A DNA stretch of 64,000 nt from the sequence record NC_042013.1; one strand, 5' to 3'. Below are positions 12,941 through 54,281 of the stretch, one piece after another. A program made the position numbers and the translations under genes. The notes below the pieces were generated by a model. It had not been told where the DNA came from, did no database searches, and was given only the letters and a program-made list of their open reading frames with translations. The first letter of the stretch is position 1. Every line of letters starts with the position of its first letter.

Positions 12941-13003
12941 TAAAAATCCTTCCACTAAAATCAATTAATGGAAGGATATCATGTTTTCAAAAATAGTCAA
13001 TTA

Positions 13004-21562: not shown

Positions 21563-22327
21563 ATGCATAATCGTAAGTCAAAATACACAAAAGAATTATT
21601 AGAACCAATCGTAAAAGAATCTCATTCAATGGCTACGGTTTTAAGGAAATTAAATTTACACCCTACAGGCGGATGTCATCAATATCTAAAAAATAAAATA
21701 ATCAATCATGGAATAGATATGTCGCATTTCACCGGCCAAGGGTGGAATAAAGGTTTAACAGCCGAAACCTCCGATGGAGTTAAAAGATCGCGTGATGCAA
21801 ATGCATATACTGATGAACAAATTTTATGTAAAAATTCTCCGCAAACAAGGTCAAGCCAGCTAAAATCTTTGATGATCAAAAACGGAAGAGAATATATATG
21901 CGAAAATGGTCATCCAGCAGAATGGATGGGACAGCCAATGACATTACATATTGATCATATTAATGGCGAGCGTACGGACAACCGCTTAGAAAACTTACGG
22001 TTCCTATGCCCTAATTGTCATCAACAAACGGACACGTGGGGTAGCAGAAAAGTAAAGTATAAATCAAAACGAGAAACTAAAACATCCACACCTAAAATTA
22101 AAAAACAATATACGTGTATAGAATGCGGAACGGTATCGCATCGGCGTGGTCGATTTTGTAGTAAAGAATGTGTCAATATCAACAGAAACAATAGATATCC
22201 ATTAGGGAATGTTCCAAAAGAAGATATCATTGCGAAATTAAACGAACTTGGGAATAATTATCTACAAACAGGTAAATTCTTCGGTGTATCTGATAACGCA
22301 ATTAGAAAGCGTTTGAAAACAAAATGA
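21563..22327 (+). CDS. free-standing HNH endonuclease with C-terminal Cys4 finger/HTH
   Basis: LHIDHINGERTDNRLENLRFLCPNCHQQT; CIECG...CSKEC. Confidence 0.9.
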   Translation: MHNRKSKYTKELLEPIVKESHSMATVLRKLNLHPTGGCHQYLKNKIINHGIDMSHFTGQGWNKGLTAETSDGVKRSRDANAYTDEQILCKNSPQTRSSQLKSLMIKNGREYICENGHPAEWMGQPMTLHIDHINGERTDNRLENLRFLCPNCHQQTDTWGSRKVKYKSKRETKTSTPKIKKQYTCIECGTVSHRRGRFCSKECVNINRNNRYPLGNVPKEDIIAKLNELGNNYLQTGKFFGVSDNAIRKRLKTK

Positions 22328-25295: not shown

Positions 25296-25904
25296 ATGAC
25301 GAAAAAACTAACCCCCGCTGAATGCGGAAAATTAGGTGCCATTGCTACTAAAAAATATATAGATCAACAAAACGAACAAAAACTATTAGCATATGATTTA
25401 AGCCCCACCCTTTGCAAAAACTGTTCAATAAAACTGGAATATGCAAAACGCCATAATAAATTTTGTGGCTCGTCATGTTCTGCAAGTTATAACAATGTTT
25501 TAAAAACTAAAAAAGTCAGTAAACAGTGCAAACATTGCAATAGCAGCATAAAATCAAAAGCAATTTATTGTTCACTGAAATGCCAACACGCATATGAATG
25601 GTCCGTAAAGAAGGAAAATTTCATCAACGGTTTGTTTGAAGAATATGGTCACAAAGTAATCAAAAAACTGATTATTGATATCAAAGGTTATAAATGCGAC
25701 GGATGTAATATTACCGAATGGAAAAATGCGCCTATCGTTCTTGAACTAGAACACAAAGATGGTATTTCATCCAACAACCATATAGATAATGTTTGCTTAT
25801 TATGTCCAAACTGTCATTCCCAAACACCTACGTATAAAGGCAGGAATAAAGGAAATGGTCGTCATATTAGGCGAGAACGATATCGGGATGGTAAAAGCTA
25901 TTAA
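25296..25904 (+). CDS. free-standing HNH endonuclease with Cys-rich repeats
   Basis: LELEHKDGISSNNHIDNVCLLCPNCHSQT; two CxxC...CSxxC units. Confidence 0.9.
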   Translation: MTKKLTPAECGKLGAIATKKYIDQQNEQKLLAYDLSPTLCKNCSIKLEYAKRHNKFCGSSCSASYNNVLKTKKVSKQCKHCNSSIKSKAIYCSLKCQHAYEWSVKKENFINGLFEEYGHKVIKKLIIDIKGYKCDGCNITEWKNAPIVLELEHKDGISSNNHIDNVCLLCPNCHSQTPTYKGRNKGNGRHIRRERYRDGKSY

Positions 25905-39146: not shown

Positions 39147-39602
39147 TTATTTCCAATTCTTCTCGGCTTCATCAAGAACAGCATACATAATGGTATACTT
39201 CTTCATTCTTTCAAAATCCTTTTCCCTAAGACCCTTCAATCTCGTAAGGTCCATGTTATTGGTGATATCCGCTTTTTTAACCCGAATAGCATCAATGTTG
39301 GTAAGAATCCCTTCAAGGTATTCCTCGTGCGTTTGGCCGGGAACTTTTGTAAGAAGTCGAACCGCATCAATAATACGATCAGTCATGTTGTTTTCACGAA
39401 GTTTCTGATAGGTGCCTTTGGTGTATTTGCAATCTTCGATATAATCGTGAAGGAGGGCAATACACATCAACTCTTCATCGTTGGACCTAAGTAGGTTCAT
39501 AACTGCAAATACATGAAGAAGATATGGGTTACCACCTTTATCATATTGACCATCATGACCGGTTGCGGCGAGAACGCTGGCAATGTTAAGAAGATGTTTC
39601 AT
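39147..39602 (-). CDS. HD-domain (p)ppGpp hydrolase-like protein (SpoT-HD/Mesh1/small alarmone hydrolase family)
   Basis: H.GQ.DK.G.PYLLHV..V ... ALLHDYIED ... V.LLT ... VKKADI..N. Confidence 0.85.
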   Translation of the reverse strand: MKHLLNIASVLAATGHDGQYDKGGNPYLLHVFAVMNLLRSNDEELMCIALLHDYIEDCKYTKGTYQKLRENNMTDRIIDAVRLLTKVPGQTHEEYLEGILTNIDAIRVKKADITNNMDLTRLKGLREKDFERMKKYTIMYAVLDEAEKNWK

Positions 39603-39665
39603 GGTTATTCTCCTTCTGTTGATAGTTAGAGAATATATGTCATTTAAAAAGAAGTCAAATACTTT

Positions 39666-40502
39666 TTAAGCTTTTACTATGTAAAAATAAATCATATCAG
39701 GGTCTACAGTAACTTTAACTTCATAACCAAGGGATTTAAGTTTCGGTTCAAACTTTTTGATCATTTTTTGATACGTTTTACCCAAACTCACGTCACCATA
39801 GTTTTCACCGGAAAAATCGATAGATTTTGGTTTTTCGTTTTGTATGAATTTAGTAATTTCTGAAATTACAGTTCCGAGGACTTTAAGAGAATCCGATAAT
39901 TTTGCCCCTATGCCGGGAGTAAACATATCATCTAAACCTTTTCCTACAAATCCATAATCAACAACATATTCATCAGGATCATCAAAATTTTCATAGAAAC
40001 TAAGGAAATATTTTATATCATTTACCGTGAAATAAACTGTTTTTTTGTTCATTCCCATTTCAGGTTCGCTAACCGTTGCAACTGAATCGAATGCCTCTAC
40101 TTTAATTTTCTTACCGGGATATACAGGGTCTCTGCCAAGAGACAAACGGACAGCATCCTCGTCGGATACATGGTCTGGAGCATCGGCTATTGCTCTAAGT
40201 CTTTTATGATATTGCATATCCTTTGGTTCTTTTTCACCAAATGGACTCTCCGCATCAAAATGATATCCATTAAATTCAACCCAAGAATGACCGGGGAATG
40301 TGCCGTCCGTATAATCCGTTGTTGAATTAACAACTTTTGCATTTGGTCCAAGTTTTTTAGCTAGTTTATTGGCAAATCCCCAACACCATCCGTTATTAAT
40401 TTCCCAAGCATCCTCACCGAATTTTCTAACCTCATTTCGAATTAATTTCGATATTTCGCTTCTAGTTAAGGACTTATTTTCAAGAAGATCATTCCAACGC
40501 AT
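39666..40502 (-). CDS. probable internal-head/virion protein, ELFD-repeat family
   Basis: MRWNDLLE start; C-terminal half matches the repeats of 40504-41394. Confidence 0.7.
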   Translation of the reverse strand: MRWNDLLENKSLTRSEISKLIRNEVRKFGEDAWEINNGWCWGFANKLAKKLGPNAKVVNSTTDYTDGTFPGHSWVEFNGYHFDAESPFGEKEPKDMQYHKRLRAIADAPDHVSDEDAVRLSLGRDPVYPGKKIKVEAFDSVATVSEPEMGMNKKTVYFTVNDIKYFLSFYENFDDPDEYVVDYGFVGKGLDDMFTPGIGAKLSDSLKVLGTVISEITKFIQNEKPKSIDFSGENYGDVSLGKTYQKMIKKFEPKLKSLGYEVKVTVDPDMIYFYIVKA

Positions 40503-43336: not shown

Positions 43337-43396
43337 GGTGCTTAACCTATTAATAAAGTATACGTAATATTTATAGGAAAAGAAAAAGGCGGGTTG

Positions 43397-44110
43397 TTAC
43401 CCGCCTTGTGGTGCACCGATTGGAATACAAGATGCCGAAAGCATTTTTGGATAAAAGTCAAAATTCCGCATCAGTGTCTTGGCACGAATACTGTACGATG
43501 TCACTTTACACTTATTCAATCCCGGCGCAACTGCGGCTGCTACGTAATCAGGATAGAACAAGTTACCCTTATGAACGAGAGACCATATATGATTGAATAT
43601 CGTTGGTTCTACACGAAAATAGAAACCTGTTTCCTCATCCAATGGCAACGAACTATTACCGAGAACCGAATGCACGTTTCCTTCTGGATCGATTTCCTCA
43701 CTCTTGGTAAGATAAATTTCTTCATCAACCTTTGATGTAAATGCGTACATAGTTGTATCAAACGCAAGAACAACAATAGTTGTAGCAAACACATAACCAA
43801 CAAGAACAGTAACAACCACAGTTATGCCAGCGCGGGTTTTTGAGAATCGTAGATTTTCAAAGTCATCACGATAATACACAACGTATGACCAAATCCTGCG
43901 ATATACATTGAAAATTTTACCAACCGGCCAACGGAAAACTTTGAATACAGGATATCCGATGTTTGCCCACACCCATTGCAATGCCCATACAAATTGCCAT
44001 ACAAAGCGATATAGGCGGTTCATATCTTCTTTAGATCGCTGGAACCTCGACTCGGATTTGGCCTTTGCAAGCCGTTCCTCGGTCATTTTTTGAATGGTAT
44101 ATTCGTCCAT
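43397..44110 (-). CDS. membrane protein with C-terminal extracytoplasmic domain
   Basis: start refined to MDEYTIQK (AAGGAG RBS); TM segment GITVVVTVLVGYVFATTIVVLAF. Confidence 0.75.
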   Translation of the reverse strand: MDEYTIQKMTEERLAKAKSESRFQRSKEDMNRLYRFVWQFVWALQWVWANIGYPVFKVFRWPVGKIFNVYRRIWSYVVYYRDDFENLRFSKTRAGITVVVTVLVGYVFATTIVVLAFDTTMYAFTSKVDEEIYLTKSEEIDPEGNVHSVLGNSSLPLDEETGFYFRVEPTIFNHIWSLVHKGNLFYPDYVAAAVAPGLNKCKVTSYSIRAKTLMRNFDFYPKMLSASCIPIGAPQGG

Positions 44111-44124
44111 TTTCACTCCTTTAA

Positions 44125-44200
44125 AGTATGGATAGCGTTCTCCTCTAAAGAGGAGATTTAGTTTAGGAATAACATAGCCGCGCTCCGGCATTAGGGAAAC
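44125..44200 (-). ncRNA. putative omegaRNA/IS605 right-end remnant
   Basis: TCTCCTC-TTTA-GAGGAGA hairpin with CTTTAG core (44156-44139) and GCCG/CGGC hairpin directly 3' of the tnpB-like ORF. Confidence 0.4.
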
Positions 44201-44202
44201 TC

Positions 44203-44952
44203 TTAAGTTTTGATTTTAGCAACAAAATCTTCTAATTTCAATACCGATTTTCCTCTTTTTTCTATTTTTGTTATCGTATTGGTTTTCATGATTTCATTGA
44301 GTGTATGGTGCATCCAATGTCGGATTCTGTTTCGTTGTTTTTCAAACAAAATGCTACGTTTTTCTTTGTTAACTTTTTTGGCAATGTGTTTGAAATAAAA
44401 TCGGGTTATCTCTGGAGGCATAATAATAATGGTTCCATCTGATAGATGTAATGAATGACCGACTATTGTTATTGACAACGGCGGTTTTTGGACTGGCGCG
44501 TCATCAACGTGGTATTTCATTTTCAACTGAACATACCATTTTCCATTTCTATTGTAAAAGGAACCACCGTCAATTTTTACGTCTTCAAACCTTACCGTTT
44601 TATGAAAACGATGTAATTTGAATTTCATTTCCTTCAGGGAGTCTACTGAAATCTTTCTATTCACACCAGAACCGTCGATTGTGAAGTTTTTAAATAGTAC
44701 CTCATAATCCCAATTACCGAGTTGCCCAATGATTGACTTGATACTACGTTCTGGCAAATCATCGATATTGAAATTTTCTTCAATGTATGTCTTAAGAATT
44801 TCTCGGCCTTCACTACCCCTGATGTTCAAAGGGATAATGTATTTGACGGAACCTTGTGAAATTTCCCTAAGCTGGTTGATCCAATTTTCAAGAACAATTA
44901 AATGGTTCTTTGAAGGATAACATCTAAAATGATGAACTCTCTTAAGATACAT
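44203..44952 (-). CDS. tnpB: truncated, catalytically degenerate TnpB-like protein (IS200/IS605 OrfB derivative)
   Basis: HHFRCYPS...LEN (HTH start), GKWYVQL, LSITIVG...LSDG at RuvC-I, QRNR..W.H...I....I..IE; RuvC-I Asp absent, no Zn finger or RuvC-III. Confidence 0.62.
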   Translation of the reverse strand: MYLKRVHHFRCYPSKNHLIVLENWINQLREISQGSVKYIIPLNIRGSEGREILKTYIEENFNIDDLPERSIKSIIGQLGNWDYEVLFKNFTIDGSGVNRKISVDSLKEMKFKLHRFHKTVRFEDVKIDGGSFYNRNGKWYVQLKMKYHVDDAPVQKPPLSITIVGHSLHLSDGTIIIMPPEITRFYFKHIAKKVNKEKRSILFEKQRNRIRHWMHHTLNEIMKTNTITKIEKRGKSVLKLEDFVAKIKT

Positions 44953-44960
44953 GGCACGCC

Positions 44961-45443
44961 TTAAATTGTTTCGATTTCTAGTTCTTCGAACGTATACCTG
45001 AATGTAACATACTCTCCACGGCAACCATATGGATTGGATTTTATACTTTCAATGGCCTGTTCGAAATTGTCTTTCATATCTCTATAATATTGAAGTTCGG
45101 TTTCGGTGTCTGTTATTAGTTTTTTTGTTAACTTACGTTGTTCTTCGGGCAGGGCAGACAACACGTTAATAGTTTGTTGCGCTTTGGTTATATTTTCCAA
45201 CGCATTTTGCAAAAAACCATTATATTTTTCAATCGCGTCGTCAATATATGGTTGACTAATTTTTTCACAATATTCACGAATCTTGTCAACCGATTCCGAC
45301 TGAACGACTTTACTCAAAAAACCGTCCGTGACGTCGAGATTTTGAGGAGTTGATTCGCACCAGCGATCACCCCTGTATTGTTTATAAATTTTAAAAATTT
45401 TCATATCCGGTCTCTTTAAAGAATAGACTCGGGGGATCGCCAT
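44961..45443 (-). CDS. hypothetical coiled-coil protein
   Basis: 160-aa ORF in operon. Confidence 0.7.
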   Translation of the reverse strand: MAIPRVYSLKRPDMKIFKIYKQYRGDRWCESTPQNLDVTDGFLSKVVQSESVDKIREYCEKISQPYIDDAIEKYNGFLQNALENITKAQQTINVLSALPEEQRKLTKKLITDTETELQYYRDMKDNFEQAIESIKSNPYGCRGEYVTFRYTFEELEIETI

Positions 45444-45723: not shown

Positions 45724-45756
45724 AAAAAAGAAAAAGGGGCTAATAAGCCCCTTTTA
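45724..45756. terminator. intrinsic terminator after clpB-like gene
   Basis: AAAAGGGGCT-AATA-AGCCCCTTTT. Confidence 0.75.
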
Positions 45757-53947: not shown

Positions 53948-54281
53948 AGGTGTTTATATCTTCTTTTCCATACCGATCATTATTGTATAAAATGTTTGAT
54001 GATAAATTTTTGTTACCCCATTGAAAATTAGCCCATTTGATATCGCTAAAATCAAAACGGTTGAACGGAACCGGTATAATATCTCCCAACGAACTATGCA
54101 CTGCTTTAAGTCGCGGCAACCTATCATCGCTATAGTATTTCCATATACCAACAATAAAAACACTACCGATATTATGTACATCATATTTTTTGTAATGAGT
54201 ATAGTTGTCATGACGTTCGGTTAAAATATCTATAGTAATACCACTATTGTATGATTTTAACAATTCATCGAAATTATACAT
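53919..54281 (-). CDS. family A paralogue, cluster 2
   Basis: start refined to MYNFDELL; SSLGDIIPVPF. Confidence 0.75.
   Translation of the reverse strand: MYNFDELLKSYNSGITIDILTERHDNYTHYKKYDVHNIGSVFIVGIWKYYSDDRLPRLKAVHSSLGDIIPVPFNRFDFSDIKWANFQWGNKNLSSNILYNNDRYGKEDINTFVLERFSYV

Follow-up and report, generated by a model that had tools for sequence, protein, structure and literature searches.

Gp489 of the lytic Agrobacterium jumbo phage Atu_ph07 is a truncated, catalytically dead descendant of TnpB maintained by purifying selection

What use does a virulent jumbo phage have for a TnpB-like protein that has lost its nuclease? The question is raised by FDI40_gp489 (gp489 below), annotated 'hypothetical protein' in Agrobacterium phage Atu_ph07 (NC_042013, 490,380 bp, genus Polybotosvirus). 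The stretch of 64,000 nucleotides analysed here, which we call the window, matches bases 310001-374000 of this genome with 100% identity; positions are window positions unless another locus is named. TnpB is the ancestor of Cas12, and an earlier note on this DNA, made from the letters alone, had read gp489 as a nuclease-dead, truncated TnpB with an IS605-type hairpin downstream, possibly domesticated as an RNA-guided binder. We find that gp489 descends from TnpB, is catalytically dead and truncated, occupies a fixed position in the gene order and is under purifying selection. On balance, we lean towards regarding the product of this TnpB-derived, dead and selected phage gene as most likely a non-cleaving binder of nucleic acids, for which a regulator resembling TldRs, the TnpB-like nuclease-dead repressors (Wiegand et al., bioRxiv 10.1101/2023.11.30.569447; Xiao et al., 10.64898/2026.09.22.753285), is the leading candidate.

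When 1.84 billion representative proteins were searched exhaustively with phmmer, gp489 had three matches. These were its own 96%-identity cluster, P0003 (E = 4.4e-4), a 399-residue TnpB carrying the Pfam domains HTH_OrfB_IS605, OrfB_IS605 and Cas12f1-like_TNB, and P0002, a 2481-residue cadherin-repeat protein whose match was judged spurious. Neither this search nor a word-indexed protein search revealed relatives beyond the cluster and P0003; a scan of IMG/VR recovered Atu_ph07 itself only, and a scan of the JGI metagenomes gave no match. By BLASTP, residues 1-232 of gp489 are collinear with residues 1-280 of P0003 (25% identity), and 105 of the 120 TnpBs of the P0003-like family match gp489 in the same register. 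P0003 gives the best score (49 bits), with bacterial TnpBs at 36 bits or less. A profile of 27 TnpBs, from whose construction gp489 was excluded and which, like our other comparison profiles, was built mostly from GC-rich bacterial proteins, recognized gp489 as its sole match (E = 7e-4) among the 465 six-frame open reading frames (ORFs) of the window. Profile-profile comparison with the TnpB family by hhalign gave a probability of 69.5% (E = 4e-5), the NCBIfam model guided_TnpB matched residues 85-230 of gp489 to its positions 120-290 of 389 (E = 4e-4), and PHROG 506 ('transposase') matched at E = 0.007. No Pfam family was found for gp489 at E<=1, and its 11 known variants gave OrfB_IS605 only (E = 1.4-2.5).

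Structural comparison, proposed in the earlier note as a check, points to the same family. A model of gp489 provided by the ESM Atlas itself, with a predicted local distance difference test score (pLDDT) of 0.77, matches TnpB clusters at template modelling (TM) scores of 0.59-0.66 over about 210-228 residues, independently of the alignments made in the present analysis. AlphaFold, supplied with an alignment that included TnpBs, produced a model of pLDDT 59, in which the WED and RuvC parts reach 70-82 and REC stays below 50; without an alignment the value was 36 and the model unusable. For the former, the top 24 Foldseek matches among PDB entries consist entirely of TnpB, Cas12f, Fanzor and the related LaTranC, headed by ISFba1 TnpB (E = 3e-4), with low TM-scores (0.2-0.33) owing to the poor model. 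The closest structural neighbours are ISDra2/ISFba1 TnpB and Cas12f (8BF8, 8EXA, 8H1J, 8IAZ, 7WJU, 8J12), in which RuvC is complete, a TNB/zinc finger is present and the omegaRNA or single-guide RNA is defined, whereas gp489 lacks the last ~100 residues; our TnpB comparison family matches such solved TnpB/Cas12f structures at E = 1e-56. In BFVD the protein's own entry comes first, after which viral TnpB/Fanzor-type transposases lead. A phmmer search of PDB sequences gave one chance match, and the weak, short matches in PADLOC (E = 0.002-0.003) were judged uninformative. All methods thus agree, though below the thresholds of the curated libraries, that gp489 is a very diverged TnpB descendant.

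The motifs from which TnpB had been recognized by eye all fall in register with P0003. In a 29-sequence alignment of the TnpB family with gp489, residues P13, R115, W139, G173, W213, H215 and E231 (gp489 numbering) are invariant, and further motif pairs between gp489 and P0003 are LSDGT/LSSGT, RHWMHH/KHWQH and IEK/LEK. The RuvC-I strand has decayed: gp489 has LSITI---VG where P0003 has LSVGIDRGV, G-I-D-R-G being invariant in the TnpB family, and the position of the catalytic Asp is taken by a three-residue gap (BLASTP, MAFFT) or by Thr (HMM alignment), never by an acidic residue. The counterpart of the RuvC-II Glu is retained as E231, a point the earlier note had missed. Only 18 residues follow it, so that the zinc-finger/TNB domain and RuvC-III are missing, as that note had stated, and the lid as well, a loss of about 100 residues; no remnant of TNB or RuvC-III was detected in any reading frame, either downstream of gp489 or anywhere in the window. 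The Asp-Glu-Asp triad of RuvC is therefore not intact, with the first Asp missing, the Glu kept and the region of the third Asp deleted, and on its sequence gp489 cannot be a RuvC nuclease.

The gene is nevertheless no relic. The gp489 cluster comprises 11 distinct variants, 88-98% identical and each exactly 249 residues long. The DNA of seven of these was used for pairwise comparison and for the alignment of the downstream spacer. Ratios of nonsynonymous to synonymous substitution rates (dN/dS) range from 0.11 to 0.21, with dS up to 0.41, the same range as in neighbouring genes, and the deficit of nonsynonymous changes is highly significant (Fisher p 1e-8 to 1e-15). Four additional metagenomes gave contigs that differ by up to 9%, and in these indels occur solely at 44164-44168, in the downstream spacer, and at 44953, one base upstream of the start codon, and none lies inside the ORF. 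Neutral decay is thus excluded over the sampled divergence and gp489 is a selected gene; the proposal of domestication rather than decay, for which dN/dS across relatives had been named as a check and frameshifts in relatives as a refutation, holds on both counts. Gene order is constant in all loci, and synteny is kept at 6 further loci. No deeper synteny could be obtained, because gp488 and gp490, compared with phage records by tblastn, matched Atu_ph07 only. At one locus (L015, run X5) a 376-bp deletion (window 45000-45377) removes gp490 and leaves gp489 and gp491 in place.

The surroundings are those of an ordinary phage gene. A same-strand run of small genes leads from the ClpB-like ATPase gene gp492 through the ORFans gp491 and gp490 to gp489 and gp488, and an HD phosphohydrolase also lies in the neighbourhood. 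As had been noted before, tnpA is lacking: no tnpA or other transposase domain is found near gp489 or annotated across the window, and insertion sequence (IS) ends are likewise absent. Gp489 is present in a single copy whose position is constant in all relatives, and a transposon context is thus absent. Canonical intrinsic terminators (a GC stem followed by a U-tract) are located on the minus strand at 43386-43407, after gp488, and at 45732-45755, after the ClpB-like gene; a gp491-gp488 transcription unit may extend between them, with no terminator separating gp489 from gp488. Features of the locus are collected in Table 1.

Table 1. Positions of gp489, its conserved motifs and the elements downstream of it (window coordinates)
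Feature	Coordinates	Strand	Remarks
gp489 ORF	44203..44952	-	ATG start, 249 aa + stop; WED, REC, RuvC-I and RuvC-II only
WED strand FRCYPS (residues 9-14)	44911..44928	-	N-terminal; FRIYPS in P0003; P13 invariant
GKWYV (residues 137-141)	44530..44544	-	WED strand before RuvC-I; identical in P0003; W139 invariant
RuvC-I strand LSITIVG (residues 159-165)	44458..44478	-	Degenerate; catalytic Asp absent
W213-M-H215	44308..44316	-	Helix between RuvC-I and RuvC-II; W and H invariant in TnpB family
E231	44260..44262	-	Counterpart of RuvC-II Glu; opposite invariant E279 of P0003
Sigma-70-like promoter match TTGAAA-17-TAAAAT with TG	44213..44241	-	In last gp489 codons, directed toward gp488; 10/12 to consensus
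gp489-gp488 spacer	44111..44202	-	92 nt; two conserved blocks flank indel-prone 44164-44168
GC hairpin GCCG-GAGCG-CGGC	44177..44189	-	Invariant in 7 relatives
Hairpin TCTCCTC-TTTA-GAGGAGA	44139..44156	-	Stem of 7 bp, loop of 4 nt; sense strand without a U-tract after it
gp488	43397..44110	-	237 aa; downstream ORFan with one clear hydrophobic segment; ATG 44110 behind AAAGGAG

The closest full-length relative, P0003, belongs to the same phage lineage. Sister phages encode it on a 1.2-kb insertion that separates their counterparts of gp443 and gp442 (L006:10005-11237; contigs of 215-498 kb) and lies about 31 kb downstream of the gp489 homologue; in Atu_ph07 the corresponding site, at about window 12952-12978, is empty. 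The 27 nucleotides at this empty site form a hairpin, the loop of which appears reverse-complemented beside the insertion in the sister phage. P0003 keeps D193, E279 and D368 together with the zinc-finger cysteines, and no tnpA is located nearby, which makes it a solo TnpB of the IS1341 type (tnpB without tnpA). It occupies an intergenic gap in the manner of an ordinary gene. Unlike gp489, which is truncated, dead and found in every relative seen, it is intact over 399 residues and present in some genomes only. The lineage of Atu_ph07 therefore possesses an intact TnpB that is variably present and a dead one that is fixed. The score advantage of P0003 over bacterial TnpBs, to which the shared AT-rich composition may contribute, would fit an origin of gp489 from a TnpB resident in these phages.

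The ESM Atlas also contains viral clusters of short TnpB-like proteins similar to gp489 in length (238-310 aa); some bear the label 'IS605 OrfB fragment', and many come from Uroviricota. They are the nearest neighbours of gp489 by language-model features (0.95) and match it in structure at TM 0.6-0.66, but neither an alignment nor an E-value connects them with gp489, none was found by exhaustive phmmer at E<=1e-3, and they are uncharacterised. Short TnpB derivatives in phages may be common and unstudied, since the Atlas lists many clusters of 240-310 residues, several of them mostly viral.

How far does gp489 resemble the TldRs? These include C-terminally truncated forms without RuvC and zinc finger, and truncated members with a dead RuvC still repress promoters and bind both guide RNA and DNA (10.1101/2023.11.30.569447; 10.64898/2026.09.22.753285). 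The described clades are associated with fliC-P, oppF or csrA (10.1101/2023.11.30.569447; 10.64898/2026.09.22.753285). Their guide RNA, a scaffold of ~97-100 nt with an adjacent guide of 9-16 nt, was found by means of covariance models (CMs) of related TnpB omegaRNAs. Gp489 shares with TldRs the TnpB origin, a degraded RuvC triad and a C-terminal loss of RuvC and zinc finger that many TldRs show; it also shares the lack of a transposase and IS ends, and a fixed neighbourhood of non-transposon genes, and some TldRs are phage-borne as well. The loss of transposon context, the stable neighbourhood and the intact ORF are the marks of domestication in that family. The differences are that the host is a virulent 490-kb jumbo phage rather than a prophage or chromosome, that gp489 stands beside ORFans and a ClpB-like ATPase rather than fliC, oppF or csrA, that no adjacent ~100-nt guide-RNA scaffold was detected by CMs or Rfam, and that the protein, known by sequence only, has diverged beyond detection by Pfam. 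Judged in this way, gp489 is TldR-like in protein and in context and, at the levels of RNA and of function, a candidate at most. Two claims of the earlier note need correction. Since published TldRs also include C-terminally truncated forms, it is not established that gp489 is more reduced than these; and the prophage setting it had alluded to does not apply, Atu_ph07 being described in its genome paper as a lytic jumbo phage that lacks an integrase and from which lysogens could not be recovered, with no transposase mentioned.

The 92 nucleotides between gp489 and gp488 are where a guide RNA would be sought. Both hairpins reported there exist and are conserved, and the two blocks of the spacer are as conserved as coding sequence in the seven relatives, which counts toward some RNA role. 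Three substitutions occur in the stem of the hairpin at 44139-44156, all C-to-U in the 5' arm, so that pairing is kept as G.U solely in an RNA of the sense strand. The loop reads TTTT in five of the seven relatives, changing the CTTTAG core to CTTTTG. No other C-TTYA-G hairpin of at least 5 bp was found in the 128 kb searched. Both hexamers of the putative promoter, a consensus match only, are invariant in the seven relatives. The gene gp488, to which the family libraries gave no match, starts at ATG 44110 and not at ATG 44191 (264 aa), the start chosen by some gene callers; the longer ORF is ruled out because relatives carry frame-breaking indels of 1-2 nt between 44191 and 44110. From the sigma-70-like match with its invariant hexamers in the last gp489 codons, the simplest reading of the spacer is therefore a promoter-proximal, structured leader of gp488, and it is weakly a candidate for a guide-RNA remnant. 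Two metagenome runs marked 'RNA?' contain contigs over the region, by which transcription is not demonstrated. Synonymous variation is found in 4 of the last 24 codons of gp489, against roughly 35% of codons elsewhere (seven relatives, counts only). Because the final ~190 nt of the ORF differ little between Atu_ph07 and the sister phage, an overlapping RNA was at first suspected; this was rejected, the divergence there being at the level of the flanking genes and the first 600 nt of gp489 being more diverged than its neighbours.

A test for an omegaRNA was modelled on the approach of the TldR authors, using 80 bacterial loci of the P0003-like family. In 44 of these, the omegaRNA has a strongly conserved 3' end consisting of GGAAUC, a covarying stem of 7-9 bp, a CUUCAG/CUUUAG loop, GAGGAUGUCAA and the guide. 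In its stem-loop form (C-TTYA-G) the hairpin downstream of gp489 agrees with the last omegaRNA hairpin of this nearest TnpB family, but it lacks the conserved GGAAU and GAGGAUGUCAA on its flanks. Two CMs were built, R1 with 143 positions from the 44 loci and R2 with 45 positions covering the terminal module. Both also miss the intact P0003 locus, so that a missing match is weak evidence of absence. In Rfam, used on 20 TnpB loci, only HgcC was recognised, below threshold and at two loci, and the library is thus no general test for omegaRNAs. The HgcC matches (RF00062, below the gathering score; L023:2365-2485 and L027:2365-2489) partly overlap the 3' end of tnpB and run downstream, roughly at the omegaRNA position of the respective loci. 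Local DNA alignment of the gp489 region with the 3' regions of P0003 scored no higher than shuffles. Following the suggestion that targets of a guide be looked for, 12-14-mers of 44060-44260 were sought elsewhere in the window and occurred at chance level; the sole 14-mer match, at 54045, lies on the non-coding strand with a different spacing and was rejected. Thus, the hairpin described earlier is indeed of a form typical of the omegaRNA end in the nearest TnpB family, whereas its assignment as an IS605 end or omegaRNA was not supported, given the absent flanks, CM scores at noise level and a loop that is not conserved in relatives.

How, then, would gp489 work? It descends from a TnpB RNA-guided nuclease that lost the RuvC-I Asp, the zinc-finger/TNB domain, RuvC-III and its transposon context, and Atu_ph07-like jumbo phages retain it as an ordinary selected gene. 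In TnpB, Cas12f and TldR, the counterpart of the retained WED/REC/RuvC-I-II core accommodates the scaffold of the guide RNA and recognises the transposon-adjacent motif (TAM) and heteroduplex. Non-cleaving binding of nucleic acid is most likely because this core holds guide RNA and target DNA in TnpB, Cas12 and TldR, and because truncated, RuvC-dead TldRs still bind both. Gp489 might accordingly regulate a gene of the phage or of its host in the manner of an RNA-guided TldR; by analogy with the characterised TldRs this is the leading specific model, though at less than even odds. We regard gp489 as an independent TldR-like domestication of TnpB in a virulent jumbo phage, for which RNA guidance is a plausible prediction. 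In its most specific form, which we consider doubtful, gp489 would be the smallest regulator of its kind, guided by RNA or binding an RNA scaffold, made up of WED, REC and two-thirds of RuvC together with a miniature RNA from around its own stop codon. This RNA would comprise the GC hairpin and the CUUUAG-type hairpin as a collapsed omegaRNA 3' end, and the complex would bind a DNA target or the gp488 leader itself.

Several results weigh against such RNA guidance or against the TnpB reading behind it. CM R1 gave the gp489 hairpin 5.9 bits (E = 5, rank 14), which is at noise level, CM R2 did not report it at E<=10 in the window and six relatives, and Rfam gave no relevant match at the gp489 locus. 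Folding of the 3' region is unremarkable compared with shuffles (z = -1.9 and -0.8), and covariation was found in 1 of 63 predicted pairs. The 92-nt spacer is too short for a canonical scaffold of ~100 nt plus guide, unless the RNA overlaps the ORF. On the protein side, scores against curated families are all well under threshold (NCBIfam 19.7 bits against a cut-off of 100; Pfam none), and the Foldseek result is not independent, the AlphaFold model being poor and its alignment having contained TnpBs.

About as likely as TldR-like regulation is that gp489 works without a guide, possibly on the gp488 leader. Here it would be a selected TnpB-derived protein acting as a protein-only binder of DNA or RNA, as an adaptor, or as a binder of the gp488-leader hairpins that tunes expression of gp488, with the two hairpins being leader or processing elements of gp488; we regard this as a serious possibility short of a probable one. 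The three RNA-model searches without omegaRNA signal agree with it, as do the stem substitutions suited to a sense-strand RNA hairpin, a RuvC fold that is incomplete without RuvC-III, and the putative promoter, from which transcription would start at about the gp489 stop codon and make the spacer the 5' untranslated region of gp488. The promoter, however, is a mere consensus match, the failure of the CMs at the intact P0003 locus indicates that they are insensitive for AT-rich phage loci, and the characterised descendants of TnpB all work with RNA (10.1101/2023.11.30.569447; 10.64898/2026.09.22.753285).

It is very improbable that the likeness to TnpB arose by chance or composition between AT-rich phage proteins, with gp489 an unrelated ORFan. 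Such an origin would account for the sub-threshold library scores, for a best match encoded by a sister phage of like codon bias and for the failure of the single-sequence AlphaFold model, but independent profiles, mostly of GC-rich bacterial TnpBs, match the same region in the same register, the family-invariant residues coincide (P13, W139, G173, W213, H215 and E231), and the ESM Atlas structure match owes nothing to our alignments. Least credible of all is a neutrally decaying IS200/IS605 pseudogene with the hairpin as its leftover right end, since the truncation, the missing Asp and tnpA, and a hairpin of omegaRNA form unique in 128 kb are outweighed by neighbour-like dN/dS, 11 variants of equal length, indels confined to positions outside the ORF, fixed synteny and the lack of a TNB/RuvC-III remnant in any frame.

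Other features of the window lie away from gp489. There are 21 tRNA genes at 7242-28943, all on the minus strand with small ORFs interspersed, and two HNH endonuclease genes, gp460 (21563-22327) and gp465 (25296-25904), are located among them on the opposite strand. Comparison of Atu_ph07 with the sister phage revealed a hypervariable stretch at 39553-40152, which takes in the 3' part of gp482 together with the gp482-gp481 spacer. Per 200 nt it shows 50-129 differences, where most other 200-nt windows of the 12.7-kb locus show 0-21; the gp482 protein has 300 residues in the sister phage and 278 in Atu_ph07.

TldRs are newly recognised natural RNA-guided transcription factors, linked so far to prophages and chromosomal operons. 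If gp489 still binds RNA and DNA, the ecological range of TldR-like regulators would be wider, its 249 residues would set a natural lower bound on the portion of TnpB that is needed, and a very small scaffold for programmable binding would be at hand. Were the doubtful reading with a miniature RNA true, TnpB domestication would extend from prophages and chromosomes to gene control in lytic phages. A mobile, intact TnpB and a fixed, dead one can coexist in a single phage lineage, and gp489, clearly selected yet invisible to Pfam and annotated as hypothetical, shows even if it is not RNA-guided that cryptic TnpB derivatives exist among phage ORFans.

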